The notes below the pieces were generated by a model. The model saw nothing but the letters and a program-made list of their open reading frames with translations, had not been told where the DNA came from and did not search any database. A stretch of DNA of 64,000 nucleotides, taken from positions 1 through 64,000 of the forward strand of contig QPMI01000607.1 in NCBI GenBank assembly GCA_004431415.1, read 5' to 3'. This document shows, piece by piece, positions 16,701 to 57,437 of this stretch. This stretch comes from Cyanophora paradoxa CCMP329 (lineage: Eukaryota > Plantae > Glaucophyta). The position numbers were made by a program, and so were the translations under genes. How positions within the stretch are numbered: the first letter of the stretch is position 1; each line of letters begins with the position of its first letter.

Positions 16701-19700
16701 CAGTTGCTCCGCCTCAAATACGGCTACGAACGCGTCCTTTGCCCACTTCACCTTCCGGGCCCCGCCAGGGAGCGAGGCCATGGCTGACGCGCGCTCTCCT
16801 GCCCGCCGCATCGGGTGCCGCAGCTGCTTCCCATCAACCGCGAGCGCGTTCGCTACCTCACGCCACCACGCAGGCTCGCTCTTCTGCAGCGTTCCCTTGG
16901 GCGCGCCCATGTACAGGTCCTGCCAGGTTCGCAGGGTCTCGCCGTCCGCTGCCGTCACCGCGTCCATGGTCGTCACGCCCGCCCCGTACAGGGCAGGGGC
17001 CGCGACGCTGAAGACGGATCTTGGGATGTGCATTGCCACGACGTAGCGCCGGTCGAGGCGCTCCGGGTCAGGCCAAGGCTCCGCCCCGGGCAAGGTGCGG
17101 AACGCCGCATAGCGCGCGTGATTCGACATCAGCCGGTACTTACGGCGCTGCATTTGCGGCATGATCGCCGCCAGGGAGTTCCCGCGGGCGAGTTCGCTGG
17201 AGATGGGCGCGTTTAGGAACTCGGTCGGGAGCAGAGGCACCCCAAGCTTCTCCTGCAGTGCGCGCACCCGGTGCCGTACCCCCCGAGCCAGCAGCGAGCC
17301 CTCGGGCGCGCAGAGCCGGATCTGAGCCTCTGTGATTTGCGCCTCCGCTTGCAGGTGGGCTGTTCGTTTGAGGCTGTACCCCCCGTGGCTCCAGATTGCG
17401 TAATTCGTCGTCGAGGCGGCGAGGTTCCCGTGGTGCTTGACGACCCTCATCCAAATACGATCGAGTTCCTGGCACTGACTCTCGCTCAGGGTCATGAGCT
17501 TCAGGCCGTACGAGATGCGGGCCTGCACTACGGCCTCGACAAGGTAGCAGGCCTCGTTCGCGGTGAGCTTCTTGCGTTCTATCAGCGCGACTGCGCCCCG
17601 CGCCTGATCGCAGATGTACTGCCACTGACGATCCCAGTTCAGGTTTGCGCTCATGTATACCCGAGGAGCTTGAAGTGCTCTTGGGGCTGGCGGACAAGTC
17701 CGACGGGGGTACCGTTGATCTTCGGCGGGGAGGGCTGCTTCTCCTTCTTCTTCGCGGCGGGGTGGGCCCCAGGTTTGCTCTCAACTTCGCGACGTGCGTT
17801 GTTCCACGTGAAGATCGTCTTCTTCGCGTTGACCTCGATATCGTGCAGGCGGAAGAACTCGCCGGCCACGTCGGCCTGGGCCTGTAGCCCCCGCATGCTT
17901 CCGCTCATCCACTTCGTGTCATCGGCGTACGCCACGCCGCTGACGCGGGCCCGGCCCTCGCGTTCCGCAGCATCGGTCTCCCTCGGGTTCCCCATCACGT
18001 ACGCCGTGCCCGGCTCCTCCCAGCTCTCGGGGTGGGCATAGTGCTCTATCGTCTTTGCCGTCTTCTTTCCGTGCTGGCGCTCGTGCTGATCCAGGCGCTC
18101 TTGCGCGCAGAGGAGGGCATCGTAGAAGATCAGCCAGTGCAGCGGCGACTCGACACCGCCCTGCGGCAGCCCGCACTCGAGCTCGAACTCGTCGGAGAGG
18201 CCGTGACCGGAGATTGCCCGCGCCCTGCGGCGCCGGAATATGTTCCTGTGGAGCTCGATGTACCCCTCGGGTACGTTCAGCCTCCGCATCGAGAGCTCCA
18301 TGCTCTCCCACGAGACGGAGTCGTACGCTCGCCTGATATCCTGCAGCAGGATGTACAGGGCTTCTTGAACTCCTTCGCGTCCTCGAGGACTGCGTTAAAG
18401 ACGTGGAGGGCGTCGTCCGTCGAGCAACCAGGTCTGAAGCCGTAGTTGGCCCCTTTCAGGAGCCCGTTCTGATGGATTGTCCGGGACAGGCGCGCGTTCA
18501 GGAGGCCAGTGGTCAGCTTCAAGGCCACCTCCTGCAGGGTGATCGGTCGCAGGTTATTTTCGATATCCCCGTCCCACTCCCGGCTCTTAGTAATGCCGAG
18601 AATGTTGCCCTGACACACGGCATCCGGCAGGTCCCGGAGGCGGATCGCTTCAGCCACCAGCGAGAGCAGCAGCTTCCGGTCCCAGTGTACGGGCTCCTCT
18701 TCCGTGGCCTCCTCGGCGCTCTCGTCGGCTGGGCTCGGGCCCTCCGGCGCTGGGCCACCGGCCTCGTCGCCCTTACCGTCTTTGGGCTTCGGCTTGGGCA
18801 CCGGCGCCCATAGGAACTTTACCATAGCATACGAGAAGTTCGACGGCCCGGCTGCCGTGTTTCTTAGCGTTTTAATGTAGTCGCCGAGCTCGCCTTCGCT
18901 CGGCACCGACATGTCGTTTCGGAATAGTTCAGGATCCGCGTATGCTTTTGGCTCGTATTCCAACCTCCAGAAGTCGAGCAGTTCTTTCCCCATGCTATCC
19001 TTCAGCGCGCTTTCCGGTATTGTCTCTGGGGTGCAGCCCACGCGTGGGCGTCGGCGCCGGCACCATTTCCGCCAGTGCTCTTTTAGGAGTCGTTTCACTT
19101 CCTCAGGCTCCGTGTAGATTTCATACGTTTTTCCGTCCTTGGACACACGCGTGATGTGCATGATCGGGCGGTTTCGCGGCTTTTCTAGCACCGCGGCTAT
19201 ATAGGATCCGAGCTGGCGGCCGTCCATGAACTTGTCTAGCCTCTCTTTTAATGCCCTCTCGACGTCCTCCGCCTGGAGCGCCCGGCGGATTTTCTGCAGG
19301 TCGTGCCGCGTCCGGTTTCGCCATACTTTCAGCTCCCGGAAGAAGGTCGCCCAGTCTTCTTTGAGCTGCCGCCGGTGCACCTCGGCCCAGTCCTCTTCCT
19401 GATCAGCCGGGGGGGTACCTGGGGACCGGGGTACGGCTGGGACCGGCGCGGGGCTACCGCTGCGCGAGCCTTGTGAGCTGTGCGAGCTCGAGTGCGCATG
19501 TGGGGATCCGGGCGGCGGTGAGCCTTGCTCAGCCCTTGCTTGGCGCCGTTCAGCCGGACGGAGCGGGAAGGGTCGGAGGCCTTCCCTGGCGGTCACGTAG
19601 TGCAGCAGCTTCTCGATCGCCTGGACCGTCAGCTCCGACGGGATCCCGCCTGGTTCCTTCCTCCAAGCAGCGAGAATGCGGGCGACTCTGGCGTCGGCCT

Positions 19701-22314
19701 TCGCCTGCCACGGCAGGTTGCGCGGCTTGGTCGGCTTCCCCCTCGGCCCCTCATGCATAGATGTTCCTTTGCCACCTCCTGAACAAGGCTCGCGCACGCA
19801 GCGTGGATGCGGCTCAGTCGTTCGAGACGCTCTTCCGGCGTGCCCTCGCCGACGGCGTCAAGGTCCGCCCCGACAGCTTCGCCGAGCTGCCTGTTTAGCT
19901 CTCTTTTCAGCTCATCTTTCTCGTTTTGTGTGCGCTTCAGGCCGTCCGGGTCAAATACTGGTGGCCCGGGTTTCGGTTCTGGCTTCGGTCCCACCGGCGC
20001 TGTCATGCCCGCCTCCTTCAGGTCGAAGTCCGCGAACGCTGGATAGTGGTCCGAGTCGTGCGGCGCATCGACCCACGCGGGGCACGTGTGCGCGCTGAGG
20101 AGCACGTGATCCAGTGATTCCGAGACCAGCACTGCATCGATGCGCGCCGCGTGCCAGAGCGCATCTTTTGGTAGGTCAGCCGGCGTTTCCTCCTCTGCTT
20201 CGCGTTCCGCGTCCTCTGACTCGTCTACGCCGTCTGACGGCACAGGTGCCGCCGCCGCCCCGACCGACGCCCCTTGGCCCTTGCTTCCGTGCGGGGTGCG
20301 GTGCGTGATCTCGCGTGCTCCGCAGAGAGTTCCGTCATCATGTTTCGCCGCGTGGGACATCCCGGCGTCGCGCAGGTCCCACGAGTCGATCATCGTGTGC
20401 CACCACTTCCGTTCGGCTTTGTGGCTCTGGGCCAGGGCGCCGTTTCGGATGCGCGAGCTCGACGGGACCGGGACCGAGTTCCAGTCTCCCAGGAGCAGCA
20501 GGTGCGCGTTTTCACGCTCGTAGAAGTCGTCGTACATCTTCGTCAGTTCTTCGACGACCTTCTCCTGATCCTGGCGATGCGCAGCTTTGCTCTCGGACGC
20601 GGGCATGTACACGCTCGCCACGAAGAGCTGGAGGTTCCCTTTGAAGCGGAGCTCGAATCCGATCAGCCGGCCCTGGACCTCGTACTTCGTCGTGAGGTGC
20701 TTGACCCATTGCGGCGCGACCCAGAGAGCGGCGCCGCTCCCTCGCGTTCCGTCTCCTGATTTTAGCGTGTACAGGAGCTTTCCGTGCGTTATCGCGCCTT
20801 CCGGCTGGAGCGGGTCCTCCCCTCTCGACCTCAGGGCGGCGGCCATCTGGGGCCTTGTCATCGACAGCTCCTGCACGCCCGCTACATCGACGTCCCAGCG
20901 GCAGCAGAATTCTTCTAGCTGCTGCAGCTTGTAGGCGCTGGACCCTCTCGTGTTGAAGGTCATGGTCCTCAGCACCCCGTCCGGTTTCTGCTTCCTGATA
21001 GCCGGCTCGTCCCCTATGAAGTCGCCACCTTCGGGGAACAGTCTGGGGGGAAAGACATTCTCCAGACGGAGCGTCGCAGCCGCCGCGGGTCCCGCGCCCC
21101 CGGCCTTCTTGTTCAGCTGCAGCTTGGTTGCATTTTGTTTCTTTTGGCCCGTCGGCTTGCTGCCGGACGCCTTTGTAGGTGGGGCTGCTTTTGCCGCGGC
21201 GGGGGCCGCGGCCGCAGATTTAGTTTTCTTTTTCATTTAGTAACATTAGATGCGTGGACTTTTTGCATCCCAGTGCCCCCGCGGATGTGCACGGGAAAGC
21301 TATGACCTGCGGGGCAGATACCGGTGGTGCGGTTGACAAGGCCTGAGCGGGGAGGTTACAGGCAAGCTTAAGCCTGCTAGAAGTGAAGGGATTCTCATTG
21401 TCAGAGCACAGAGCACAGAGGGAGCACAAAGGGCGGTGGCTAGCGATGCTCATGATCAAATCTAGACGCCGGCTAGCGCTGCGGCAACGGCCGCTTGCTG
21501 GGGGCACGCGCATATGCAGCCGGGCGGAGCGCGGGGCCAGCGACGAGGTCAAAAGGGCTTCCTCGGACAAGTCTTCGACTTGCAGGTCGTACTGGCTATG
21601 GTCTGATAGCGACGCATGCGCAGCTGGGCTGCTCTGCGCAACGAAGACGTGAACGTCAACGTGCAATCTCGAGGGCAGCAGGGATTCGTCGGCAGCACTT
21701 CTTTCAGAGACTAAGGCGGCATCCGGGGCGCGGCGTGGTCGCCGGCAGGAACTGGCATGGATCGTTTGCACTGCGGGCACGACTGAGTCGCCGGAGCTTG
21801 ACCCGGGGCCGGGAAAAGCTCGATCGGCGAAGAGACATTCCGAATCACGACTCGAAAGTCGGAGATCAAATTCCGTGGGCGCCCGGCGGGCCACCGAGCA
21901 ACAAGCGAAATCCCGGCGGGCCGAACGGACGTACGCGGCGGCGGCGGGGATCTAAGTCTATGTTTTAGAGGGTCTGGGCATGTGCACGCCGCCGCGAGGG
22001 AGCTTGCGCAGGCAGCGGGGGCACGAGAACTATTCAAATTTCGGGAACATGGCGCGCGCCAGAGGGCTTCCCCTGACTGAGAACAACTTCTATTCCATGG
22101 ATTTGGTGGCGAAAGGTCCGATTTTAGAGCGAAACGCGAGAGGACGGCCGGCATACCTCCATCTCCGGAATTCCGTTGATGTCGATACCACCGGGCGCGC
22201 CAGGGGCTACCGAATGCTTCTACGCTAGCCGCTGGTCCCGCCGCGCTTTTGCACGAGCAGGAAAGACGTTTTCAGGAAGCCCCCTTTTTTTGGGGTACAC
22301 GAAAAACTCTGACC
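13794..22314 (-). mobile_element. Non-LTR retrotransposon (L1/Proto1-like, APE-RT-RNase H-CCHC), ~8.5 kb, inserted in the satellite
   Basis: Flanked by the perfect 15-bp direct repeat TCGATCCTGCACGGC (13779-13793 and 22315-22329). The satellite resumes in register after the element. Confidence 0.95.
14236..21236 (-). CDS. Retrotransposon polyprotein (~2330 aa when joined), split by four 1-bp frameshifts (~19760, ~18358, ~17660, ~15645)
   Basis: APE motifs: TFNTRG, VAGVQE, GDWN, RIDAVL, SDHYP. RT motifs: LRPITL, NYGFRPG, QDIRRAYDSV (after frameshift), GLPQGGVESP, AYADD. RNase H motifs: WTDGS, NNKAEL, HTDSQ, KVKAHS, NDAAD. C-terminal CALC..ETLEHVLTC zinc knuckle. Confidence 0.9.
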
Positions 22315-35547: not shown

Positions 35548-36475
35548 TCACTCGTCCGCCCCGCGGATCTTTTTGCGGAGCTGCATATCCTTGGGCTGGA
35601 TTGTGATGCTGCGCGCCCTCGGCGGTTACGTGCCCCTGTACGGGGCGCTACAGAGTTTTGGAGGGGGGAGAAGGGGCGGCACACCGCTTGGCATGGATCG
35701 CGAGGAGGTTGCTCCCCTCGAAAGTCTCGATGGTGTAGCTGCGTCTCGACGATCAGTTGCAGAGCTCAGCATTTTGTATACTTGTAAATCTCGCGCACTG
35801 CTCGGTGGCCTCGCGGAGAGCAAGGACGGCCTGCCGGCACCAGCGGAGAGCGGGAGTGTCGGTCAGCCTTGCCTCACGAAGCTCTTTCAGGACATCTTCG
35901 GTGATCTCCTTGACGGTGCGGGTGAATGGGGCCAGCGCAATGATGGGTTCGGTTCGCTTCTGCCACTTGCGAATCTCTCTGCGAGCGACGGAGCATCGGA
36001 TTAATATTCACTGAGCCTCCTACACTTTAAACTTAGACAACGTCATGATCAATTGCAACGTACCGGAGGGCAACCGTGCCTCCGCAAAGGCGTGCGCGGT
36101 TATAAACAAATCAGATATATAGAGATCTAGAAACATTAAGAATGATAGTCACTTTAAAATAGCTATAGTAAGAGATCTAGATCTAGAATGATATCGATCA
36201 TGATACGATGACAGTTGAATCACTTATAGTCACTTTTAATTAATTTAGCCCTTTTGGGTTCAACGGTTACAAGGCTCGCATACTGATCATGATCATGATC
36301 ATGAACATGAACTCGGACCTGGACGGTAACGGTGAGGCTTCTTGACGCCTCCTGCGGCAGGAGCCGCTTTACGGGCCGCCTTTGACGCGAGCTTCCGCTC
36401 GCCTATGTTTGCGAATCGCTTCCGCGGGGCCTTGCCCCCCGTGCTCTTTTGCGCCGTGTGCTTCGTCCGTGCCAT
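35548..36475 (-). CDS. Divergent histone H3 variant, 155 aa, 4 exons (36475-36319, 35994-35799, 35738-35685, 35608-35548), CenH3-like histone fold
   Basis: Manual splice gives [155 protein letters not shown]. Introns 2 and 3 (60 and 76 nt) are GT..GCAG with matching phases. The intron 1 acceptor reads AT, not AG. Confidence 0.88.
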
Positions 36476-36610
36476 CTGGCTAGAGCTTGCTTGGGCCGAA
36501 AGGCCCTGCGGCCTCACCGGTGTGTGCACGCGTGGGTGCTCTTATTTATATATTCGTATACACACGGATTGTTTTTTTTGCGTCGTGCATTTCAACTCAG
36601 AACCAAGAAA

Positions 36611-37247
36611 TCAAGGGGCGTCGGACTCGGATTTCGAGCCGTCGGCGTCCGAGGCCCCGGCGGCCTTGATGCGAAAGACGTTCTTCGGCATGCGAACGAG
36701 CGGCTCGCCCTTGCTGTCGACGAGCTTCCTCACGCGCTCGTCGAGCCGCTTCTCGATCTCCTCGAGCGCCGCCTCGTCGGCGCGCTGCAGGTTGGGGAGA
36801 AAGGCGACAAAGTCCGCCGGGCTGACTCCGTCGCCCACCACGCGCGCGAGGCCCGGGAGGCGCTGCAGGACGCGGGCGCAGGCCGCCAGGTCCGAGTAGG
36901 CCTTGGCGCACACCGAGCGCTCCTCGAGGCGGAGGCCGCAGGCCTCGAGGATGTGGTTGTAGCGCGGCTCGACGCGGTCCCGCCGAAAGTAGCCCCAGCT
37001 GCGGGGGTTCCGCCCGTTGGCCTCGACGTAGCGCTCGTACGCGCCGAGGATGCCCGTCGAGGCGAGGAGGAGGCAGCGTATCCGCTCCCGCCCCGCGTGC
37101 TGGGCCCGCAGGAGGAGGGCCCGCCGCGCCGCGGGGTCCCCGTCGAGCTGGATCCCGACGAGGGCGGCGTCGACGCCGCGCCGCAGCCCCCGCTCGAGCT
37201 CGCGGAGGGAGAGCGTCCCCTCGCTCCTCTCCGAGACCGCCTCTTCC

Positions 37248-37285
<38 letters not shown>

Positions 37286-38634
37286 CTCGTGCTCCGCGTC
37301 CGCGTCCGAGCCCGAGTCCGACGTCTCCTCGCCGTCCCGATCCCGATCGGCCGCCTCGAGCTGGGTCTCGAACTCGGCCCGCTTCTGCTCCTCCCACTCG
37401 TTCATCGGCCCGTCCTCGCCGGTGGGCTCGCCTCCGGATCCACCTCCGCCGCCGCCCGCGCCGGGGGCCTCGGTCTCCTCGCCCGCGCCCTCGCCCGCGC
37501 CCTCCTCGTCCTCCTCCTCGTCAAAGTCCTCGCGCTTGCACGTGTAGGCGTCGTAGAGGATGCGCTGCAGCTTCTCGCTCTCCCACGGCGGCCGCCGCTC
37601 CGACGAGGCGGGGCGGCGCTGCCGCTTGGCCGGCGGGCCCTTGGGCGCCTCGATGGCCAGCGGCGGCTCCTCGTCCTCGAGCTCGTCCTTGTCCTCGGCG
37701 GCCGCGGGGGCCATGCGCCTCGCGCGCGTCGCCCGGGCCGCCGGTGCCGGCGCCGGCGCCGGAGCTCCCCCGGCCGCCGCCGCAGAGCTCCCCTCGGGCG
37801 CCGTCGAGGCCTGCGAGGCCCCGGCGCGCCCCGAGCGGCGGGGCGTCGACGCGTTCGAGTCGGTCCCGCCCTTGCGCGCGGGCGCGGGCTGGGCGGCCGC
37901 GGGGAGCCCCCGGCGGGAGGCTCCTGGGAGGCAGACTCGGCCGCGGGCGCCGCCGGTCCCTGGACGAAGAGGGCCCCGCCCCGCCGCTCGTCGGGGGCGC
38001 GCGGCGGCACGAGGCCAGCGCGGCGAGCTGGATCGCGCGCGAGACGCCCTCGGCCGCCGTCCAGGACTCGGGGCGCTCGGCCTCGTGGACAAAGGCGCGG
38101 TAGGCGAGGTAGCCGTCGACGCGCGACGAGGGGACGAGCGCGGAGAGCGTCGGGTGCGGCTCGCTGCACGCGTTCTGGAGCATGGGGCACTCGACCTCGC
38201 CCTCTTCGTCCCCGGCCGCACCCGTGGGCGCCAGAACCTGCGCAGAAGGGGGCGTTGGGCGGGGGGGGAGGGGGGGGGGTACGGTGGGGGTACGGGCGCG
38301 GGGCCGGCACCTTGGGGACGCAGGCGAGGCACACGAGGCCGTGGCGCTGGAGCAGGTGGCCCGTCGGCTCGTCGTTGAGGTCGATCGCGCGGTCGAGGTC
38401 GCCCCCGCCGGCGAGCTCGGCGATGCTCCTGGCCAGGCATGCCGGCACGTACGCCGGCGGGAGGAGCCGCTCCGCGGCGCAGACGCTGCACCGGGGGCGC
38501 ACGTCGAGCTCCAGCCAGGCCGAGATGTACTTGGGGCGGGCGATCCGCACGGGCCGCGCGTCGATCGGCGGGGCCCCCGATGCTGCATCCTCCTGGGAGG
38601 ACGCCGCCTGCTTGCCCTTGGCCTTGGCCCCCAT
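36611..38634 (-). CDS. Unknown protein, spliced: N-terminal CxxC pairs, acidic/low-complexity middle, helical C-terminal domain; paralogue of 41468-44107
   Basis: ATG at 38634 (MGAKAKGKQ..RCSVCA..GLVCLACVPK), intron 38310-38238 (GTGCCG..GCGCAG), and coding-like C-terminal ORF 36611-38491. The middle junction is unresolved. Confidence 0.6.
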
Positions 38635-39343
38635 CGAGACCGCGGGACCCGTGTTCCCGGTACCCCCCGCTCGAGCCGAGGGGGGTACGCGGGCTCTTTC
38701 AATCCTGCACGCGGGAATGAGAATCCGTGGGGGTGGACTGCAGCTCTTTATGAATTTCCTCTGCGCGGGGATCGGCACCTGGGGGCGGGGGGAGGCCGCT
38801 GTACCCCTCCCCCGCGCCGCATGTGGTTCCACGGGGGGCTGCATGCCGGTCAGGGGGCGTTGAAGGGGGTACGGTGGGCGATGAAGTGAGAGAGGGGGTA
38901 CCGAGCTCTAGGGGGAAGGGCTGACCGCGATGCAACCGATCGCCCCACTAAAGAGTGCAGGGGCCCCTCCCTCTGCGCAGCATTTCGACGTACCCTGTCG
39001 CCGCTTTGATCAGCCCCCCCCTCCCCCCTCGCGCGGCCGGCGGGCCGGGGCCGCGCGCGCAAGAGTCGGACCCGCGCACCGCGAGATGCAAGGCCGGGCG
39101 GAGAGCGTGCCGTCGGCGGCGCGGGGGGAGAGGCCGGGGCTCGCAAAGTCGGGCGCGTGGGGTGCGGCTTGTACCCCTCTCTTGCCTCTACTGGCCCTCT
39201 CCTAGCCCCTGGAGCGGCTGCATGACGGCCAAGGGGCGAGGAGGGGAGGGAGGGGGGGAGGGGGGGGGGGGGGGGAGGAGGGGGGAGTGAGGGGCAGGTC
39301 TACGAGTTTGGAGAAGAAAGAGGGTACCGGGAAATCTTTCGAC

Positions 39344-40210
39344 GCGTGACCGCGATCCAGCCGGTTGCCGTACTCACTGCGCGGCGGGAAAACGCCGCCG
39401 TACCCCCCACCAGCCCTCGCCTCCTCCGGCCCTCTCCTAACCCCGGGAGCGGCTGCATGGTGGTCAGAGGGGGAGAGAGGGGGAGCGAGCAAGGTGGGGC
39501 TACAAGGTTTCAAGGGTAGAAAACAAGGGTACCGGGCGATCTTTTCAATGCGTGACCGCGATGCAGCCGGTTGCCGTACTTAACGCGCGGCTGGGGAACG
39601 CCGCCGTACCCCCCCTCCCGCCAGCCCTCGCCTCCTCCGGCCCTCTCCTAACCCCGGGAGCGGCTGCATGGTGGTCAGAGGGGGAGAGAGGGGGAGCGAG
39701 CAAGGTGGGGCTACAAGGTTTCAAGGGTAGAAAACAAGGGTACCGGGCGATCTTTTGTGACCGCGATGCAGCCGGTTGCCGTACTTGAACGCGCGGCTGG
39801 GGGACGCCGCCGTACCCTCCCGCCAGCCCTCGCCTCCTCCGGCCCTCTCCTAACCCCGGGAGCGGCTGCATGGTGGTCAGAGGGGGAGAGAGGGGGAGCG
39901 AGCAAGGTGGGGCTACAAGGTTTCAAGGGTAGAAAACAAGGGTACCGGGCGATCTTTTCAATGCGTGACCGCGATGCAGCCGGTTGCCGTACTTAACGCG
40001 CGGCTGGGGAACGCCGCCGTACCCCCCCTCCCGCCAGCCCTCGCCTCCTCCGGCCCTCTCCTAACCCCGGGAGCGGCTGCATGGAGGTCAAAGGGGGAGC
40101 GAGCAGGGCAGGGCTACGAGGTTCAAGGACAAAAAAAGGGTACCGGGCCGTATGTCGATGCGCGGCCGCGATGCAGCCGCCTGCCGTACTTGCTGTACGG
40201 CGGAAAGGCG
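39344..40210. repeat. ~207-bp tandem repeat (4 copies plus degenerate flanks), each with an internal imperfect inverted repeat
   Basis: GTGACCGCGAT(G/C)CAGCCGGTTGCCGTAC at ~39345, 39552, 39757 and 39965. Inverted partner CGGCTGCATGGTGGTCA within the units. Confidence 0.92.
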
Positions 40211-41467
40211 CCGCCGGACCCCCCTCTGTTTCAACCCCACCCCCGCCGGCCCTCTCCCGACCCCGCGAGCGGCTGCACGACGGTCAGGCGGGGAGAGAGC
40301 CGGGCAGGGTACGGGAGCGCGGACGAAGTTCTCCCCACGTACCCCCGCGTGACGGCACCTGCTGCGGGCGGCGTTTCGCGCCGGCGGCCGGCGTCGGGCC
40401 GGCGCAGCGCTAGAGGTGCGCCGCGAACCGTCGCACGCGTCCGCCTCGCGTCTCCTCTACCCCCGGGATCCCTCCCCCTGCGGGCGGGAGACGGCTGCAT
40501 CGCGGTCAGACGGGCGGGCGAGCGGGAGGTCGGGGCGGGGGGAAAGACGGGGGAGCGCACGGCGCGGCCCGCAGAGCTCGAGGCGGCCGACCCGGTGCGA
40601 CCCGAAAGCGGCCGACCCGGGACGAGGGCGCGGGGGATGGGGGGAGGGAGGGGGCGGGCGGGGGCGCGCTTGGAACCGTACCCCCCGCGCTCCATCGCAC
40701 GCCGCCTTGATCCGCCCGACGGCCGCATCCTGGCCAGAGGGATCAGATCCAGAGGGCGCGGCGGGACGGGAATCGGGGGCGGGACGCACGGGTACGACCC
40801 GCTGCGCCGCCACCAAGCGTAAGGCGGCTCGGCGGCTCGACGAGCGCCGACCGGCGCGCCGCGCGGCGGGCCCGCTCACGCCTCTCGCAGCCCCGCCGCG
40901 GTCCGAGCAAGGGCTGGACTGCGGTCAGCGCACCCCGCGCGCGCGGGGAAACGGGGACGCGCGCGGCGAGAGCGCACACGCACTAGTACTCGGGTCCCGG
41001 GGGGCGGGGCGCGTGCGCCGGCCACGATGCAGCCGATCGCGGGACGACGATGCCGAGAGCTGGCTGCAGCGATGATGCGCAGGCGCAGGCGGCGCTGGAG
41101 CCGGGCGGCCAAGCTCAAGGATCGGCAGCGGCTCGGATCGCCAGCAGGATCGCAGCGAGGGCGCCGGTGAAGAGCTAGAGGACACCTGCCGTGCGCAAGA
41201 AGCCGATGCCCTCCGGCCGCTCGCCCGCCTCGAGCGAGGCCTCGGGCCGAAGACGCGCGGGGGCGGCGAGCGGCGAAAAGCTCGACCTGCCGCGAGGTTC
41301 CTCGCGCACGCGACGCGCCCCAGGACGCGCAACCTCCTCGCCACGCGCACCCGAGAACGCCCCAAGCCGACCCGGCTAGGCTCAATGCGTACCCCTTTTT
41401 GCGCCGGCCAGCGGCGGCTTGCGGCTAGCCCGGCTTGAGGACTCGTCGAGCGCTCAACGAGTCCTCG

Positions 41468-44255: not shown

Positions 44256-46008
44256 CTAGGATGGGGAAATAGATGGCGGGATCGATATCGAGGCGGGCGC
44301 CCCGAACAGGCTGCTGGGGAGGTCGTCAAAGGACCACGTGGCCGCCCAGCGCCGCTCCAGACCGTCGTCCCGCGTCAGCATCCAGAGCATCTCGGCCGCC
44401 GCTCTTTGCGGCGGCGGCAAGGAAGGGGAGGGGCGCAGGGGCGCCGCTGCGGGGGCCCGGGGGGTCGGGACTGAGACGGGCGCCCCGAACAGGCTGCTGG
44501 GGAGGTCGTCAAAGGACCACGTGGCCGCCCAGCGCCGCTCCAGACCGTCGTCCCGCGTCAGCATCGAGACAATCTCGGCCAACGGCGACAGCTTCTGCCG
44601 CCGCCGGCGGCGGCTGCCGCTGCTGCCGGCGCCGGCGGCCGAGCCCGGGGCGCGCCGCTTCTTCGACTTTGCGCCGCTGCCCTTGCGCTTCGAAGTCGCC
44701 CTCAGGACGGGCGGGCTGTCCCACCACTCGCCGAAACGCGGGTCGAGGGGAAAGGGCTCGGGAGGGGCCGGCCCGTCGCCGTGAGCGGCGCGCTTCGGCG
44801 CCCCGCCGTCCGAGCGGCCCAGCCGTCGCTTTGTGTGCTCCGACTCGAGCACCTCGTCGCGGCTGCACGTCCCGAGCCTGGACTCTTCCAGCGCCTCGAA
44901 CAGCCGCGGAAAGTAGCCGCCGCCTGCGGCCGGTCCGGATCAGATCGTCCCACAGCGAGGCGGGAGAGGCGGCGGCGGCGGGGGGCGATACCGTAGCTGG
45001 ACAGGAGGATCTGCGGCGGACGGAAGAAGCCGACGTCAGCCGCCGGCAGCCGCCGAGGCCGCGACAGGCACGATGCGCACCTCTTGGCCGTGCCGAATGG
45101 ATTTGGTGGCGCGGACGGTGACCGTCTTCCTCCTGGTGTCGGCCGAGAACCTGGCGTTGGCCCTTGACCGGACGGGATACGCGCAGTTGAGGAAGCGCCC
45201 CGTAAAGTTCTCCAGCGCCGCATCGATGTAGTGGCAGGAATCGATTTTGAAGCAGTAGCTGCGCCCGCCGGGCCCCGCGCAGGTCGTGAGAGATGGTTGG
45301 GGCGAGCCGGACGGCGGACGCCCAGGCGCTCCGGCGGGGCGCAAGGGTGGGGAGCTTACACCCAGTCCCCGGTCCCCTCCATCTGGTCGAGCACGTGAGG
45401 GTCCGGGTTGCACAGCAGGATCCTGCGCGAGAGGCTCGGGGGGCGAGCTTGCAGGGGCGGAGACGGAGCAGCGCCCGCGCGGGGACCGGCGCACCCGTCG
45501 TACGGGCAGATAAAGTAGCGCGCGCTCGGTCCAAAGACCTCGACCTCTTCCGGCCTCTTTCCGAGGGCCGCCGCCGCCGCCAGCGCCTCGGGCGACGCCA
45601 CCGCGAACAGTCCCTCGCCGTCGCACACCGTGGATCGGCCGATCCGAAGCTGTTTTGGGCGGATTCGCTCTCAGAAAAGGAAACAAAAACAGATTTTGGC
45701 CAGGCCGGCCCGCCGCCGCGCACCCCACACTGGGCGAGGTGCTCCGCGCATAGCGGCGTCTTCTTTGTGAGCGCGGTGCAGCCCTTCCGCGCGCATCTCC
45801 GCAGATGAGACTCTTCGGACAGCCGTAGTCGGAGCTTCTCGCACTGCCCGCGGTCGTACTTTGCAAGGCGCTCCTGCACGAGCTGCAGCTGGACCCGCGC
45901 CTGATCAGCGCTCTGCCGCGGGGTCTTCTTCGGACGCGGCGGTGGGATCGATATGCATTGTGTGATCCGGAACTGTCGCAGGGCGCGTGAGGCCTCGCGG
46001 GAAGGCAT
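44256..46008 (-). CDS. Spliced SET-domain protein (putative lysine methyltransferase), ~6 exons
   Basis: Joining GT..CAG introns (e.g. 45723-45650) gives ..CARKGCTALTKKTPLCAEHLAQCG-LRIGRSTVCDGEGLFA..ICPYDG-..GDWV-YCFKIDSCHYIDAALENFTGRFLNCA..ANARF..VTVRATKSIRHGQE-ILLSSY-GGGYF. This contains SET motifs GxGLFA, RFxN and GxE..Y. Confidence 0.82.
44293..44565. repeat. ~90-bp direct repeat in the 3' exon of the SET gene
   Basis: Encodes MLTRDDGLERRWAATWSFDDLPSSLFGAP twice. Confidence 0.9.
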
Positions 46009-46128
46009 GGCCCATGCCGCGCGTCGCGTGCGTGTCTACCCCCAGCTTGGCGGCAGCGCCGCGCGTTTAAAAACGTAGAACCGCTGCAGCTCGCCCCGGG
46101 GGCAAGGATGGACGCCACGAATGCAGCG

Positions 46129-46425
46129 ACACATAGACAATGCCCGCGTTTTATCCCTCGGCTAAGTTTAATTATAATTTGTTTATAATTTACCTATATT
46201 TCTTGCATATTTAACGTTAATTTATGTGTATTTTATCCTTTATTCTTGTCTTTTATGTGCGTATTTCATATATAATACTAACGTATCCCTTACTGAAATT
46301 TAATGTATTCGTATCTCCGATGTATTTTACCTCTATCTCTCGTAATCACTTGTATTTGAGGTGGATTTTAAACTTAGATAAATTATATCACGCCTCCTGA
46401 TAAAACGCGGGCATTGTCTATGTGT
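46129..46425. repeat. Perfect 27-bp inverted repeat enclosing ~240 bp of T-rich DNA at the element end
   Basis: ACACATAGACAATGCCCGCGTTTTATC (46129-46155) and its exact reverse complement (46399-46425). Confidence 0.95.
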
Positions 46426-46770
46426 GATATTACGCATTATCGTGTATAATGATATGGAAATAATATGTGTATGCATTGTGAATGAATAATATGTAAAATA
46501 TGTAAAATGTATCAAAAGAAATATGTATGAAATTCTAACGGAATTCCGTCGAAAAATAATAAAATGTACTTTCTCGATTAAATGCGTAGCATATATGGAG
46601 CGGATATGGCGCCGCGATTGTGTTAAAACAGCTACAATGTGCTGTATGGAGCGCGGGGTGTATAATACAACAAGGATAATATATGATACTTGATGATACT
46701 TTATGATTACTTATAGTATTTTATGACTGATATTATGTTATTTTAATGGGTTCTTACTGATAATGGTATG

Positions 46771-46860
46771 TGTTACAGGTGTTACAGGTTCATCCCAAAC
46801 TTTCCCTAGGAGGAGGTCGGCGGCTTGGAACTTTGGGATTGACCTGTAACACCTGTAACA
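46771..46860. promoter_or_regulatory. Palindromic iteron pair (9-bp GTTACAGGT x2 facing ACCTGTAAC x2), origin-like
   Basis: TGTTACAGGTGTTACAGGTTCATCCCAAA ... TTTGGGATTGACCTGTAACACCTGTAACA. Confidence 0.6.
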
Positions 46861-46910
46861 CCACACTGAAAAACAATTAATTAACCTGTTACATCTTCTT
46901 TTACCACTTA

Positions 46911-47367
46911 TTACCGTGTCGGAAATCTCGATACTTTATGTCTCTCCGTATTAGGAGATCCACCAAAGATACCTATTATCCTCTCTTCTATTAACGATGA
47001 TATATTACATGTCTTTCCCTCCGCGTCCCTTCCGCAACTGAATATATCGATGGCTAACATGCCCTCGTCTGAGTAACAATGAGCGGTGCAATGACTCTCA
47101 TCTAATAGGAGAACTAATGTAAAACCCGGAGGTGAAAGACCACCATCGAAAATCTCGTAATGCTTGTGAACTACTCGTATACCTTGTTCTTGTATAATAT
47201 CTTGTAAAAAGTGCATTAACCATTTTGTTGTGGTCTCTAAGTTGTCCACTCCCGTAATTAGAAGAAGAAGAGTATGTATAAGACACGCCCAAGCCGGTTG
47301 TGCGGTTTTTAATTAGCGGACTCGAAAACTTGTAATCTAACATCACATGGAAGCCCCGATGGTTCAT
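46911..47367 (-). CDS. speD: S-adenosylmethionine decarboxylase proenzyme (small prokaryotic/viral type), one frameshift near 47270
   Basis: N-terminal GFHVMLD, then F..PPGFTLVLLLDESHCTAHCYSDEGMLAIDIFSCG, which contains the ESH autocleavage site and the DIFxCG motif. Confidence 0.88.
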
Positions 47368-47411
47368 TTATGAATTATATAGAAAAATTAAATTACGGAA
47401 ATAAGGTAAAG

Positions 47412-48812
47412 ATGCCGTCAGCACAGATAGGATTAAGACCCACTCCAAAGATCGTAAAGAAGAGCATGAAAGAAGATCAGGGTAACATGCTACCTATAAC
47501 CATTCCGATAGAACAGAAAAACACACGAATTTTAAAGAAGTCTGAGATAGTTAAAGAACTGATCCCGGAGGCATTGCCTACTGATACTGTAACGAAAGAA
47601 TCTAAGATTGCTAAGAAGTTTTACGATCCGCGCACCGGATACAAGGGTTTCGGAGCTATGAGGAAGGAGTTACCAGATGAAGACTATAAGAAGATGAAAG
47701 AATGGTATGATAAACAGGAAGTCGTTCAGATTAACGCGCCTACCCTTTCAAGAAAGAGAGACCCGATGATACCAATTAGGCAACCTCTCGATACCTATGT
47801 TATAGATCTTCTGTTTTTCCCGGCTTATAAGAAGCAAAATGACGGATACGATACGTTTATGTCCGCGATGGAATCAACGCTTAGAACAGGTTATATTATT
47901 CCGATGAGAGATAAGAGCGCTATTACGACTCTTGCCGCTTTCGAACAGCTACAAAAGAGAGTCCCTCGACCTATCGCACGCGTCCAAAGTGATAGCGGGA
48001 GCGAATTTACGAATACGGTGTTCACTAACTACCTTGCTAAGAAGTTCATCGATCATCAGATTAGCGATGTCGCAGATCATCGTAGTCAGGGTAGAATTGA
48101 AGCGTTTAACAAGCAGATCAAGCGGCTTATTACGAACTATTGCATAGCAAACAACACAGCGCGATTTTTCGATGTATTGGGTGACATTGAGTATAATTAT
48201 AATCATACTGTTCATTCAGCGACTAAGAGAAAACCCGCAGAAACCACAGATGAGCATTATAGAGAGATCATAGGTTTAGAAGACGAGAAGTTTAAGAAGT
48301 CGATGGCTTACTTAGACGGTATTCAAAAGGGTATGTTTGTGCGGGTGAGAATAGAAAAGAACCCATTCGCTAAACAGGGTGTCAATTGGTCGCGGATCGT
48401 TTATACTGTCGAGGGTAGGGAGGGTTTTAAGTTTCGGTTACGAAATCCGAATGGTGAATTGGTCGATGGAAGGTTTGCTTTCCACGAACTGTTACCTATC
48501 AAAGGTGTAGAGTATCATGAGGCGCCCACAGGTGATGCATTAGAACAAGCCAAAGAAGAAGCGCGTGTGGATGCGGCGATACGAAAGGAAGGCATCGAAA
48601 AAGCGGATGATGTCCCAGAAGAACCGCTAACACAAGCCAGAACTAAGAAGAAAGGGAAGGCGGAGCGTGAAATTAAGAAGTTGGTCATAGCAGGAACCCA
48701 GAAGCTATCAGAGGTCAACAGCCAGAGATGGTATACAGACTTCCAGACCTCAAAAGAGACATATACAGCACCTCAAACCCGGGTAAATCTACGATCCAGT
48801 TCCCGGAAGTAG
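47412..48812 (+). CDS. Retroviral-type (rve, DDE) integrase of the Polinton class
   Basis: FYDPRTGYKG; IDL (D), QSDSGSEF (D), GRIEAFNKQIK (E); YNHTVHSATKRKP; C-terminal G..VRV..F.K..NWS..Y.V..GRF..HEL block. No chromodomain is evident. Confidence 0.93.
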   Translation: MPSAQIGLRPTPKIVKKSMKEDQGNMLPITIPIEQKNTRILKKSEIVKELIPEALPTDTVTKESKIAKKFYDPRTGYKGFGAMRKELPDEDYKKMKEWYDKQEVVQINAPTLSRKRDPMIPIRQPLDTYVIDLLFFPAYKKQNDGYDTFMSAMESTLRTGYIIPMRDKSAITTLAAFEQLQKRVPRPIARVQSDSGSEFTNTVFTNYLAKKFIDHQISDVADHRSQGRIEAFNKQIKRLITNYCIANNTARFFDVLGDIEYNYNHTVHSATKRKPAETTDEHYREIIGLEDEKFKKSMAYLDGIQKGMFVRVRIEKNPFAKQGVNWSRIVYTVEGREGFKFRLRNPNGELVDGRFAFHELLPIKGVEYHEAPTGDALEQAKEEARVDAAIRKEGIEKADDVPEEPLTQARTKKKGKAEREIKKLVIAGTQKLSEVNSQRWYTDFQTSKETYTAPQTRVNLRSSSRK

Positions 48813-48938
48813 CTTAGATGCGTAGAGGATGAAAAGAGGATTCCGGCGATGGTCGCGGTTTTGAAAGGCGATCAGTTGGTGAAGAGTTATAGCAGTTTGT
48901 ATGAATTTCTTGGAATTTTTGGTTTCTTTGGGTTTCTT

Positions 48939-49062
48939 CCCCCATCGTTCTGACTATTTCCCCCATTGTTCTGACTATTTCCCCCATTGTTCTGAAACCA
49001 TCCCCCATCGTCCTGAAACCATCCCCCATTGTCCTGAAATCATCCCCCCATCGTCCTGAAAT
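48939..49062. repeat. 21-bp tandem repeat, ~6 copies, between convergent genes
   Basis: CCCCCAT(C/T)GT(T/C)CTGA..... repeated. Confidence 0.9.
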
Positions 49063-49360
49063 GTCCGAAATTCCCACGACATATATACACCATATATACA
49101 CGACATATTTACACTATATATACCAAAACCTCCGTAATGCCGTTTGACCGAGAACAAAATGTTTGGAAAAAATAATAAATAATATTATTATATATACATA
49201 TACATATATATAATCAAAAAATCGGAAAAAAACCCCTCGTTTTTCTACCGTATAAATGCGCCCGTAACATCGACTCTCATAGTCGGAGCATTTATATATA
49301 CCAAAGGATAAATACGTATATATCGTGTTCTCAATGGATAACCTATGTAAAATACATCAT

Positions 49361-50779
49361 TTACCGAAAGTGGGAACCCCATAGCATATGATACATCCCA
49401 GAGTTATTAGCATTATTTATATTCTCACATACAAACATTCTATTTACACCCTCATATTTGATAAATGACCATGTTATATCATCTTGCGATGTCGCAACAT
49501 TGAAAGTCTTAATAAACGCAGTTGTTATACCTGAACCATATGCAATTATAGAAGCGACCTCAAATGTATATGGGAAGGCTATTTGCAAATATTCAGTAGG
49601 CGTTTCCCATACTCCGTTAATTGCGGATGCATTCGCTTCCCATCCAGTTAATGATGGGCGGGCTTTAAATGCCTCTTTTCCGAATTTTGCAGAAGAAGCG
49701 GTAAACGCATTATCTGATAGAAGATACCAGTTAGCATCGATAGGAGGTATGTTATTAAGGGTGGATGATACATAGGATCTTACAGGGTTCTTAATCTCAT
49801 AGTTTGTAACAAGTAACTCACAGAGTCGATCTATCATGGCGTCGTTTGCTTGTATATACGTTTCAGTCGCCGCGATCATGTCTGGAATCTTAGAAGTATC
49901 ATCGAGGGAGTTTAAGATATCTTTCGGAAGCGGCACAGAGATACGGTAGTATCGCGCGTATCCTTGGTCATCATTATATGGTAAAAACTCTTGCATCTTT
50001 TCAAGAGCCGATAATTCACTTGCAGCCATTAGCATATTGATTAATGGACTCCCTGAGGTGGAAGCAATCCATGAAAGAATACCCCAGGTATTCACACTTT
50101 CGTAAGAGTAACCCACATTTGGTGCGTCGGTTTCGTTAACCTCACCACATGATATGCTAATAACTATAATATCGTCATCGTTATCATAAATCTTTTTTGC
50201 GTGACTATAACCACAAACACTTGGGTTATTGTTACCTGATATAGCACCATCAATTAGACACATGCCGTTGTAATCGACAGGAGCAAAATATGTAGGAGCG
50301 GCGGAAGTAGAACGTGCCGCTATTTTACTTGGTATAGTCTTGTAATCATTATCATTTGCTATGAAAATTGGTTTCATGCTTACAGTGTCGAACGTCGTAA
50401 TAACCACATCTTTTAGTGAATCTTTTATGAGAGCTTCCCCAGTCACAGAGAAAATAGCGGTTTCTAATGGTGATACATCATATTTAGTATTGAAAAGTGC
50501 ATTCTCTATGATATTCCGCGGATTCGCAAAGATGAGAGGAAGATGATATAGGTAAGTATTGTGAAGGTCGGTAGCTGTTAATTTAGGTTCATCGGGAAAT
50601 TCGGGATTTTTCACATTGAGACCGATAGCGATAATACCGCCTGTGGACGTTCCACTTACAAGATCGACCAAATCAATAACGCGTTTACCCGTTCTTGTTT
50701 CTATTTCTTTTAACAACCTTGTTATGATAATACCACGTGCGCCGCCGCCGGACAATGCTAAAACTACGCGTAAGGGCAT
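49361..50779 (-). CDS. Patatin-like phospholipase fused to a C-terminal F5/8 type C (discoidin)-like domain
   Basis: Patatin motifs LSGGGARG, GTSTG, SAAPTYF and DGA..NNP. The C-terminal FTASS..A..AR...W...EYLQI......I...G.....KTF.V..S.D...W......F pattern fits F5/8C. Confidence 0.88.
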   Translation of the reverse strand: MPLRVVLALSGGGARGIIITRLLKEIETRTGKRVIDLVDLVSGTSTGGIIAIGLNVKNPEFPDEPKLTATDLHNTYLYHLPLIFANPRNIIENALFNTKYDVSPLETAIFSVTGEALIKDSLKDVVITTFDTVSMKPIFIANDNDYKTIPSKIAARSTSAAPTYFAPVDYNGMCLIDGAISGNNNPSVCGYSHAKKIYDNDDDIIVISISCGEVNETDAPNVGYSYESVNTWGILSWIASTSGSPLINMLMAASELSALEKMQEFLPYNDDQGYARYYRISVPLPKDILNSLDDTSKIPDMIAATETYIQANDAMIDRLCELLVTNYEIKNPVRSYVSSTLNNIPPIDANWYLLSDNAFTASSAKFGKEAFKARPSLTGWEANASAINGVWETPTEYLQIAFPYTFEVASIIAYGSGITTAFIKTFNVATSQDDITWSFIKYEGVNRMFVCENINNANNSGMYHMLWGSHFR

Positions 50780-50828
50780 CTTTACTTTATTGAAATTTAA
50801 TAAATCTCTATTATTAGAGTAACCAGGG

Positions 50829-53800
50829 ATGAGTTTCAATTATCCAGCAAATTTACAAACCATAACAGGTAGTGGTAAAGGAAACACTAAACATGTTAAC
50901 TTTGATAATATCACCATTAAAGGGTCGGCGTCAATTGATCAGAGCGCCGATAAACCCAGTAAGACGCATCCCAGAATTCATGCTTTAACAGTGAATCAAA
51001 CAGACCCAGAAAAAGAAGATGTAAGTATAGCTTTCAGTTTGGGGAATGTAAAAAAAAACGCGGTTGCGGAGATCAAGGCAACAAGAAGGAGACCACGGAA
51101 ACTTAAAGCAAGTGGAACGCATCCCGATATTCCCACACGTTATGATAGCGGACGTTTGGTTTTTAATGTCCAGGATGAGAAGGGAGTTCATCGTAGCGGT
51201 TTGAGAATCTATAATGAAGGATCAAATGCGATTACACAAATCCCTCAGATATTACAGGTAGCCCCACATGGTGAAGAGAATCAGATTCGCTACACCAATA
51301 ATATTTACCCACAGGACATTGTCACCAATTCAAACACTAATGCACTGTTTGGTTTCACTCTTCCACCGGATACTTCCAAAGAAAAAGATTCGATCACTGT
51401 CGACAGTAGTCCCAGTCAACCAGTAGCTATACATTTACATCCCGATCTTGTCGAAATGGATCGGCATTTACTACCTTTGGTAACCAATACGAAAGACCTT
51501 GGTATTAGAACCCGACAATGGCGAAATATTCATGGTAGTAATGTTTATGCAAATGGGGAACGGCTCGTTAGTGAGAAAACCATAAGAGAGATCATAGAGC
51601 ATTACGGACCTACTCCGGTTCCCTTTCCACTTCCATGGGATCCACCAGATCTTACACCAAAGAAACAACCAGGAAGAGAATACACAGCGGATGAAACGGT
51701 TGCGTTTGGGCAGCATTTTGTTAGTTGGGAAAAAGTCCATAATAAACCAGTTTTTAAAGATTACAAACCGCCCGCTGAGGAACTCTTAGCACCAGATATT
51801 AATGTTATACCTCTCGAACATAAAGAATGTGAAGACGTGGAAGAATTGCCGGATGGATTTGATCCTAACCATATGTTATATGATCGTTACGAACCTTACG
51901 ACGAACAACTTTTACCACATGGATTAAATCCACCTAACATAGATTACGAACAGCCGCATATACCAGATGAAGAGTTATTACCAGATGGATTACAGCCGGG
52001 ATTTTTCGATTTTACCGTAGATTGGAGGGATATTATTAACAAACCCGACACATTCCCACCAGATCCCCACGAACACGAATGGGAAGACATTTTAAACAAA
52101 CCGGAAAGATTCCCACCGACAGAGCATAGGCACGATTGGGAAGATTTAGATAACATACCTACTGAATTTCCACCAGCAGATCATAGGCATAATTGGGACG
52201 AAATCGATGAGCAACCTACTTTCGCATCCGCAGGAAATGTATTAACAGATTTCCAACATGGCGTAAGTCTTTATAGAAATATTAACATAGAAGAAAGATT
52301 ACAATTAAATGACCACTACCTTAATCGCATGGGAATAGAGGCAGGCACAGGAATGGAAGCCGAATTATACATTAGACCACCCAGAAGAGAAGGCATTTTA
52401 CCAATTAGTGGTAATTTTGGTCTGTATGAGACGAAACCCGGAATTTATTTAACAAGCTACTATCCTGAGGATATCGAGATGACAAATGTATTACCTCCGC
52501 TACCGTCACTTCCATTAGATCCAAATAGTTGCGATAACAAAGACGCAGCAATACAAATTAATGTAACAGATGTTAGCGACTTTGACCAATCGAGACCCAA
52601 ATTAGTATTTAGTCGGCAGCGTCTTTTACCTAATACTTTTATAGGAGATCGAGATGATTATAGAAGATGTGAGGTAGCATGGATAAAAACAAATTATAAT
52701 GGCGGAGTTGGTGAAGGTTTATTAGAAATCAATCAAAGAGCAAGCGCCAAAAATATACACAATGAAGATATTTCAAGAGTGGTAACGGAAGATTATTTAG
52801 AAGAACAGGGATACATTGATGAAGGCGAACTTACTAATATTCTTTCACTATTCGTGATAAAAAATGATACAAACCTTACAGTCACAAGTAACATTTATAC
52901 AAGTAACATTTCAGCAAGTAACATATGGGCAAGTAACATATGGACAAGTAACATATGGGCAAGTAATATTTATGGAAGTAACATTTACACCAGTAACCTT
53001 TGGGCAAGTAATCTTTATTCCAGCAACTTAGTCGTCGATTATTTGACTGTGAATATAGAAGCAAACCTACCACATCATCCCACTTCTAATGTTGTTTTAG
53101 ATTGGATAGCAAACCACACCCATACCAAAGATGAGATCGAGGATTTTGCCCATAGGCACATGTGGAGCGAAATAGATGACCAGCCTAAGTTTGCATCAGC
53201 AGGTGATGTATTCGACACCACACATGGTGTTACTCTCTATCAAAGTAATACCATACCAGAGAGATTAAGATTAGATGAATATTATGTGAATCGAAAAGGA
53301 ATAGATGCAGGCACCACAATGGAAGGCGAATTATACATTAGACCCCCCACAAGAATGCAGATGATTGCAGCAGGCGGAAATTTCGGTTTGATGGACACCA
53401 AACCAGGTATCTATCTGACAAGCTACTATGCTGATGACATCCCAATGACAGATAGTTTAATATTATCGCTTCCATCTGATCCAGCAAACTATGATGACAA
53501 AGATGCAGCAATCCAAATTAATGTTACTGATGTAAGTGACTTAGATAGTTCAAGACCCAAATTAATATTCACCAGAGAGAGATTGTTACCAAATGCTCTT
53601 ATTGGAAATCGAGATGACTACAAGAGATGCGAGATATCATGGATAAAAACAAATTATAATGATGGAGTTGGTGAGGGTCTCTTAGAAATCAATCAGAGAG
53701 CCTCAGCGAAAAACATCCACAATGAAACAATTTCAAGAATTGTTACAGAAGATTACCTACAAGCCCAGAACTACATAGATGAAACAGAACTTGATACAAT

Positions 53801-55019: not shown

Positions 55020-55038
55020 CTATTTCGTAATTATAAAG

Positions 55039-56108: not shown

Positions 56109-56130
56109 TATTATCTGTATAGTATAAAGA

Positions 56131-57149: not shown

Positions 57150-57170
57150 TTTTCTCTCTATAAAATAGGA

Positions 57171-57437
57171 ATGTCGAATATATACCAAGTGGCTCTCTCA
57201 GATATTGAAAAGTTGGGAATGGAATATTGCGCTGCTTCTGTTCAGGATTGGATTGATAATGTTGTTCATAACAGGGCAAGAATCGCAATCGATGATATTG
57301 TTCAAAAAGAAATTCAATCTTGCATCTCATCAGGAGTTCAGATACCAACCTCTAAGGAAGCGATTGTATTACAGGCATTCCAAAGGGGAACTGTAAAGAA
57401 AGGCATCGAGTATAACAATGTCACAGAAGAGCAATGA
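57171..57437 (+). CDS. 88-aa hypothetical protein resembling small phage tail-fibre-associated proteins
   Basis: Clean ORF. QDWIDNVVHNRARIAIDDIV..GVQIP..E.IV..AF.RG resembles marine-phage hypotheticals, from recall only. Confidence 0.65.
   Translation: MSNIYQVALSDIEKLGMEYCAASVQDWIDNVVHNRARIAIDDIVQKEIQSCISSGVQIPTSKEAIVLQAFQRGTVKKGIEYNNVTEEQ

Follow-up and report, generated by a model that had tools for sequence, protein, structure and literature searches.

Results

A spliced histone H3 variant gene with a microexon

The stretch analysed here, positions 1 to 64,000 of contig QPMI01000607.1 (assembly GCA_004431415.1) from the glaucophyte Cyanophora paradoxa CCMP329, will be called the window throughout. 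On its minus strand lies a spliced, intact gene of the histone H3 family, which runs from an ATG at 36475 to a TGA at 35548-35550. Translation of the exons and enumeration of splice paths give a coding sequence of 468 nucleotides (nt) in five exons, encoding 155 amino acids (aa) and the stop. The four introns (239, 85, 60 and 76 nt) are all of the GT..AG type, all eight splice sites are canonical, and there are 0 stops or frameshifts across the five exons. The parts of the gene are as follows.

36543..36550, minus strand: TATA-box-like element TATAAATA, 68-75 nt 5' of the ATG; read from the sequence, a putative promoter element
36319..36475, minus strand: exon 1, 157 nt; Met and the H3-type tail to P43, plus base 1 of the G44 codon; followed by the donor GTCCGAGT
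36080..36318, minus strand: intron 1, 239 nt, GT..AG, 36% guanine and cytosine (GC), AT-rich and of low complexity
36064..36079, minus strand: exon 2 (microexon), 16 nt; finishes G44, encodes T45-L48 and begins R49
35979..36063, minus strand: intron 2, 85 nt, GTACGT..CGCAG; holds the alleged AT acceptor at 35995-35996 (see below)
35799..35978, minus strand: exon 3, 180 nt; end of alphaN, alpha1, extended alpha1/loop 1 and first half of alpha2
35739..35798, minus strand: intron 3, 60 nt, GTGCGC..CGCAG; interrupts the H98 codon, where the public models P0001 and P0027 read EATE-H-Y
35685..35738, minus strand: exon 4, 54 nt; second half of alpha2, including the S at the T107 position
35609..35684, minus strand: intron 4, 76 nt, GTGTGC..GCGCAG; interrupts the R116 codon, where the public models read AK-R-I
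35548..35608, minus strand: exon 5, 61 nt; loop 2, alpha3, the acidic C-terminus GADE and the TGA stop at 35548-35550

A previous inspection of the same DNA, made from its letters and open reading frames (ORFs) and here called the sequence-only reading, had described a hidden H3 variant revealed only by splicing. Indeed, the list of ORFs holds the tail-bearing frame alone (36299-36529), and the rest of H3 is concealed by the introns. Read from the ATG at 36475, the exon 1 frame gives a 52-residue peptide, the H3 tail. The histone fold is encoded in three pieces, at 35977-35801 (59 residues), 35737-35687 (17 residues) and 35607-35548 (19 residues and the TGA). GC content is 57-75% in the exons, as against 36-48% in introns 1-3.

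The sequence-only reading counted four exons and placed at the end of intron 1 an AT acceptor (35995-35996), ascribed to a pseudogenising change, a sequencing error or non-canonical splicing. It overlooked the microexon at 36079-36064; the count is five, and the AT falls within intron 2, in a gene for which a canonical GT..AG path exists. Our enumeration found no direct exon 1 to exon 3 junction, with any AG acceptor, that is both in frame and free of stops. There are 16 canonical paths with one internal exon, and a single one of them, through the 16 nt at 36079-36064, gives GTVALR. This is the G44-R49 segment of H3, nearly invariant in the family alignment. Likewise, three other C. paradoxa proteins (P0009, P0021 and P0030) carry PG(R)TVALREIRKYQ, matching the microexon-restored reading.

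The AT acceptor arose because exon 1 had been joined to 35994-35979, the 16 nt just 5' of exon 3. Since both models use 16 nt at this point, the length of 155 aa is the same in each and was correct from the outset; the four-exon junction, SVARR, is also roughly H3-like. In contrast, the five-exon model reads TVALR, and its 16-nt exon is flanked by a canonical AG and GT and restores the exact conserved GTVALR. Moreover, P0027 appears to use the exon-3 acceptor at 35979/35978 and not the one at 35995. We know of no recognised intron class of the GT..AT type. A four-exon gene with an AT acceptor, whatever its cause, is therefore extremely improbable. With every splice site canonical and the frame open, the microexon explains the junction, and thus the question of a pseudogene, a sequencing error or odd splicing drops away. 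By eye, the end of intron 2 (35979-35994) matches the microexon (36064-36079) at 10 of 16 positions, a likeness that may be due to chance or may be a trace of the intron's origin.

Public models of the gene are truncated

Exon 3 was scanned against 1.84 billion cluster representatives, yielding 26 hits. The best of these, P0001 (95 aa, 98% identity), is a C. paradoxa model from EukProt; no other hit exceeded 55% identity. It shares a cluster with P0027 (102 aa), and both are EukProt EP00741 models on "tig..." contigs. Over exons 3-5 the window has one residue that differs from P0027 and three that differ from P0001; both models are open, and the exon 3/4/5 junctions are the same in both as in the five-exon model. 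The gene is unannotated, and both public models are truncated at the N-terminus, lacking the tail and the microexon. P0027 begins with MTLSK, encoded at an ATG inside intron 2, and continues with EIRKW, from which we infer that a donor within intron 2 was joined to the exon-3 acceptor at 35979/35978.

In a collection of 5.8 billion proteins, this paralogue has no full-length product; a word-based search there with P0027 returned only P0001 and an unrelated 74-aa fragment. Exact look-ups of the exon-1 ORF products gave no record. A metagenome scan with P0027 yielded 80 loci and no close relative; its segments of 76-77% identity are short C-terminal matches, apparently to ordinary H3/CenH3 genes of other eukaryotes. 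The exon-3, word and metagenome scans, in which other glaucophyte proteomes were not specifically queried, revealed no relatives outside Cyanophora. One protein, P0034, was considered as a parallel, having an H3-like tail, W84 and a loop longer by one residue. It was set aside as little informative, as its source is metagenome contigs of unidentified origin, whose compact genes gave no Pfam hits.

The window agrees in its properties with the published C. paradoxa genome, in which GC is 67.6%, genes are closely spaced and each has on average 9.2 short introns; according to the authors of its annotation, the gene models have to be curated by hand (PMC6704402). In the public Cyanophora annotation, microexons leave histone-variant models truncated at the N-terminus, and the correct full-length model of this paralogue is new here.

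An H3-like tail on a divergent histone fold

The residues that set the predicted protein apart from canonical H3 were located by alignment at these positions.

36392..36415, minus strand: 8-residue tail insertion FANIGERK, after K18, seen as a gap in H3 alignments
35921..35923, minus strand: T codon at the Q68 position (exon 3 translation and alignment)
35849..35893, minus strand: 15 alpha1/loop-1 residues in place of the four of H3 (FKTD), net +11 (alignment to H3)
35840..35842, minus strand: W codon at the F84 position (exon 3 translation and alignment)
35711..35713, minus strand: S codon at the T107 position (exon 4 translation and alignment)

Exon 1 matches residues 1-44 of H3 chains in the PDB (E=4e-13), with a single 8-residue gap after K18. 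This match and the GTVALR of the microexon give the protein an H3-type tail and alphaN segment, PHRYRPGTVALREIR included. The changes listed by the sequence-only reading are all present. In the tail, lysines K4, K9, K14, K27 and K36 (36/37) are kept, as are S10, K18 and K23; R8Q, S28A and the 8-aa insertion after K18 distinguish it from canonical H3, and so do Q5H and T32A. Both ARKS motifs of the tail are broken by R8Q and S28A. Identity to canonical H3 tails is 70-75% over an end-to-end alignment, as compared with ~50% for the fold.

Within the fold, 15 residues replace four (FKTD) between the equivalents of D77 and L82, which accounts for the 11-aa insertion in alpha1/loop 1, and Q68T, F84W and T107S are all found. 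Further changes, at otherwise conserved residues, are Y54W, R63A and K64L. The C-terminus, GADE, is acidic and of the same length as in H3. Thus, the protein resembles H3.1 and H3.3 in carrying all the main modifiable lysines of the tail, in its overall histone fold and in the length of its C-terminus, and differs from them in the two insertions, R8Q, S28A and the three fold replacements at positions 68, 84 and 107.

Exon 3 scored 25.2 bits (E=2e-5) against Pfam PF00125 (Histone), just below the whole-protein cutoff of 26.4 because one exon alone was scored. Against the PDB it matched 175 H3 or CenH3 chains, the top one being yeast Cse4 with 30.9 bits, compared with ~26 bits for H3. The exons were searched separately, and P0027, a natural model one residue off exons 3-5, served as a stand-in for the fold. 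AlphaFold2 modelled P0027 from a 50-sequence alignment with a mean predicted local distance difference test (pLDDT) score of 84. In this model alpha1 extends ~7 residues beyond the D77 equivalent and is followed by a 12-residue loop and a normal alpha2 and alpha3. Likewise, the model of the divergent paralogue P0009 has a helix reaching its residue 85, with a pLDDT of ~91 there. In the predicted structures, an alpha1 longer by about two turns and a loop longer by about four residues therefore appear to be a trait of the family. A fold search of the PDB with the P0027 model retrieved H3-fold chains at template modelling (TM) scores of ~0.7, which were similar throughout and did not separate CenH3 from H3.

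A family of paralogues in Cyanophora

The sequence-only reading had implied that the gene is unique. This did not hold: the long loop, W84 and a residue other than Q68 recur together in at least six paralogue types of C. paradoxa, and several full-length ones are already in the public proteome. The other EukProt EP00741 models of this design are P0009/P0029, P0005/P0010, P0030/P0031, P0021, P0159/P0260/P0261 and P0020, and several of the paralogues are represented by more than one gene identifier. All the Cyanophora paralogues have an insertion of +10 or +11 residues preceding an invariant LRW. The gene in the window conforms to this pattern, with the insertion, LRW and the family-invariant core REA.E ... 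NL.A.H..R.TI.PK.

A usable model shows an H3-like tail in four of the six types, this gene included. Near-canonical H3 tails are seen in P0009, P0030 and P0021, and a partial one in P0159. R8Q and a similar tail insertion, RKRFA(D/N), recur in types D (P0021) and E (P0159). The recognition that several Cyanophora paralogue types combine an H3-like tail with a CenH3-type fold is also new here; the architecture is already public, as unnamed proteome models.

The models P0159, P0029 and P0005/P0010 fail at or just 5' of EIRKYQ, showing read-through, frameshifted tails or unrelated N-termini, suggesting that small exons at this place may be mis-annotated across the family. In P0159 the tail is present and gives way to non-histone sequence exactly where the GTVALREIRKYQK segment is expected, which looks like a further annotation failure at the same spot. 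The non-H3 N-terminus of P0005/P0010 may be an artefact or a genuine divergent tail.

A histone-fold phylogeny, proposed with the sequence-only reading as a check, placed the gene firmly among its paralogues and went no further. The six types form one clade with support of 100/99, and this clade has a supported affinity to none of fungal CenH3s, other W84 proteins and canonical H3 in a tree of ~100 histone-fold columns whose named CenH3s are mostly fungal. Weak backbone support is usual for ~100 columns of histone fold. The gene groups with type B and has the longest branch of the clade (1.48 and 0.93 substitutions per site); its type is the most divergent in the fold, with 42-55% identity to the other paralogues. 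Its tail insertion, by contrast, is common to types D and E. An approximately unbiased (AU) test did not reject a clade A+D+E of the types sharing the tail insertion, this gene included (p=0.12).

The long terminal branch would suit a redundant duplicate, decaying or unexpressed, whose frame is still open. The altered residues at Y54, R63 and K64, the absence of a full-length product from the protein collection and the position of the gene between a satellite array and a foreign-looking low-GC island also point in this direction. Such a duplicate is nevertheless improbable. The five exons are open and the eight splice sites canonical, both flanks of the microexon included; the family-invariant residues of the core fold are retained; P0001 and P0027, which differ by so few residues, are open as well; and the TATA-like element lies at a suitable distance. 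We are confident that this is a real and functional H3-variant gene of the Cyanophora family.

Is the variant a centromeric histone?

CenH3 is recognised by an extended loop 1 and by the absence of a particular glutamine, phenylalanine and threonine of H3 (Drinnenberg et al. 2014, PMC4359364). The same source also lists a tail that diverges strongly and a separate phylogenetic grouping (PMC4359364). The three residues, numbered Q68, F84 and T107 here, become 69, 85 and 108 when the Met is counted; the text of PMC4359364 gives the third as 118. The sequence-only reading was right that these are the diagnostic positions, and the fold carries all four features (loop +11, T68, W84 and S107). It was also right that the tail is unusually H3-like for a CenH3-type fold, since the lysines from K4 to K36 are kept and the tail aligns end to end.

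Several comparisons place the fold close to CenH3. When the family was used for a profile search, many top named hits outside Cyanophora were fungal proteins labelled 'Histone H3-like centromeric protein CSE4', with a loop of +8 to +13, W84, and A or S at 68. Among 261 collected proteins, W84, a residue other than Q68 and a long loop occur together, and the canonical class has F84 without the insertion. Proteins with F84 and a long loop retain Q68, and the ones that were read resemble retained introns. Even after removal of the loop and masking of positions 68 and 84, P0027 scored +6.4 bits on the W-class profile over the canonical H3 profile. Thus, the gene is like CenH3, CENP-A and Cse4 in its longer loop 1 (+8 to +13 in fungi, +11 here), W84, non-Q68 and non-T107, in being an intron-containing, variant-type gene with four introns, and in the best solved-structure match of its exon 3. 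Scans of the window found no histone 3' stem-loop, no other Rfam match and no tRNA.

The tail is the first of several findings that weigh against a centromeric role. Unlike the tails of CenH3, CENP-A and Cse4, it aligns to H3 over its entire length, and its conservation exceeds that of the fold, whereas CenH3s usually show the opposite. As the divergent tail expected of a CenH3 is lacking, we did not file the gene as CenH3. Charged and, by prediction, helical, the insert does not resemble the fungal loops, and the GADE end lacks the hydrophobic ending of the fungal CenH3 hits (GLG, GIG). At least six paralogue types is an unusual number for CenH3. The tree does not join the Cyanophora clade to CenH3, and the longest branch in the clade could reflect relaxed constraint on this gene. 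Finally, a separate, classical CenH3 may exist elsewhere in C. paradoxa, the inventory of its H3 genes being incomplete.

These findings would be accounted for if the genes were non-centromeric, lineage-specific H3 variants, that is, expanded replacement H3s marking for instance repeats, silenced mobile DNA or a life-cycle stage. The alpha1/loop 1 extension and W84 would then have an origin separate from that of CenH3, and the true CenH3 would be another gene or only one member of the family. In line with this, three of five paralogue types (P0009, P0030 and P0021) have an H3-like tail and P0159 has one in part, the types and copies are many, and the C-terminus is acidic and H3-like. Likewise, the lean towards the CenH3-class profile in the masked comparison is small, at +0.4 to +8.6 bits across the family, compared with +10 to +17 bits for controls that were not cross-validated, other such controls giving -4 to -23.

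On the other hand, all four fold-level features of CenH3 are present, and neither the exon-3 scan nor the profile search revealed any further Cyanophora protein with W84 or a long loop. In addition, the fungal CenH3 hits P0164 and P0167 keep an ARKSTGG(K/Q)(A)P tail motif, indicating that an H3-like tail motif does not rule out CenH3. A non-centromeric role for the family is a serious alternative, which we regard as possible and hold with limited confidence.

Duplication of CenH3 has precedents. The Cid paralogues of Drosophila and the duplicated CENH3 of some plants comprise several divergent CenH3-type genes per genome, suggesting sub-functionalisation. Those paralogues have non-H3 tails, differ mainly in their tails and have been shown to localise to centromeres. 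In contrast, the Cyanophora tails stay H3-like while the folds diverge, and the Cyanophora family is known here from sequence.

Judged by its sequence, the gene is a CenH3-type H3 variant and a candidate centromeric histone, not a proven CenH3. As to what this intact gene does in C. paradoxa, the likeliest role is that of the CenH3, or of one of several sub-functionalised CenH3 paralogues, and we consider this an even call. That the Cyanophora family includes a centromeric histone is somewhat probable; that this particular paralogue would be the centromeric one falls a shade below an even call.

A possible mode of action

By analogy with H3 and CENP-A nucleosomes, the variant would pair with H4 and take the place of H3 in part of the nucleosomes. 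With the insertion, alpha1 is predicted to gain about two turns and loop 1 about four residues. The resulting extension would lie at the DNA contact formed by loop 1 of H3 and loop 2 of H4 and would project from the lateral surface of the nucleosome. In CENP-A and Cse4, a dedicated chaperone and readers of the CENP-N type recognise this lateral loop-1 surface. An extension on the surface recognised by chaperone and readers would thus act as a mark for targeting and recognition. The tail, with K4, K9, K14, K18, K23, K27 and K36, would meanwhile stay a substrate for the ordinary H3-modifying enzymes.

In the literature searched, we found no description of glaucophyte centromeres or centromeric histones, nor of these genes, and Cyanophora is unmentioned in the text of a kinetochore survey (PMC5579357). 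With rather low confidence, we suggest that glaucophyte centromeres or specialised chromatin are marked by H3 variants combining a modifiable H3 tail with a helical alpha1 extension, or else that the genes form a new non-centromeric class that has converged on every CenH3 hallmark of the fold.

Annotation of CenH3 relies on the four features of the fold and on a divergent tail, and in Cyanophora the two rules disagree across a whole family. This disagreement offers a direct test of which features track centromere function. If the family is centromeric, a divergent tail is not a universal criterion for annotating CenH3, and the centromeric nucleosomes of one of the three primary-plastid lineages could bear the usual marks of an H3 tail, for instance methylation at K4, K9, K27 and K36. 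The tail and loop insertions would provide paralogue-specific peptides and epitopes.

Surroundings of the gene in the window

Upstream of the gene on its own strand, a 626-aa open frame (36611-38491, minus strand) with acidic and Gly/Glu-rich stretches has no Pfam match. It ends at 36611, leaving a gap of 135 nt to the ATG of the H3 variant. The frame is probably part of a neighbouring gene, at the tight spacing typical of the C. paradoxa genome.

On the other side of the gene, a tandem satellite occupies 1800-34000 and ends ~1.5 kb from it. The satellite has at least 20 copies of units of ~1.3-1.6 kb (some ~0.8 kb), with 60-100% identity. It displays a strong negative GC skew, embedded sub-repeats of 158 nt and 120 nt, and exact duplications of several kb at spacings of 6.3 and 10.2 kb. 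At 14000-22000 the satellite is broken by a GC-rich block (63-66%) that carries long ORFs on the minus strand. One ORF of this block (19632-21236) encodes an endonuclease/exonuclease/phosphatase domain, and the block is probably the insertion of a retroelement resembling a long interspersed nuclear element (LINE).

Beyond the 626-aa frame, a 211-bp tandem repeat of ~4.9 copies, with 86-92% matches, lies at 39317-40313 in a very GC-rich region. Over 46000-64000 GC falls sharply, from ~70% to 39%, and the ORFs, which are long, lack introns. Among them are an rve-type integrase/transposase (47370-48812), a patatin-like phospholipase (49361-50839) that also matches discoidin (F5/8 type C) weakly, and a 1396-aa fibre-like protein (50829-55019) that matches phage-tail repeats and the H-type lectin and gave no match in an exact look-up. 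They are followed by a bactofilin-like ORF (56313-56834) and by one of 848 aa that has an endonuclease VII motif (60535-63081). This low-GC segment has the look of an integrated mobile element, virus-like or otherwise foreign, although an assembly join is also possible.

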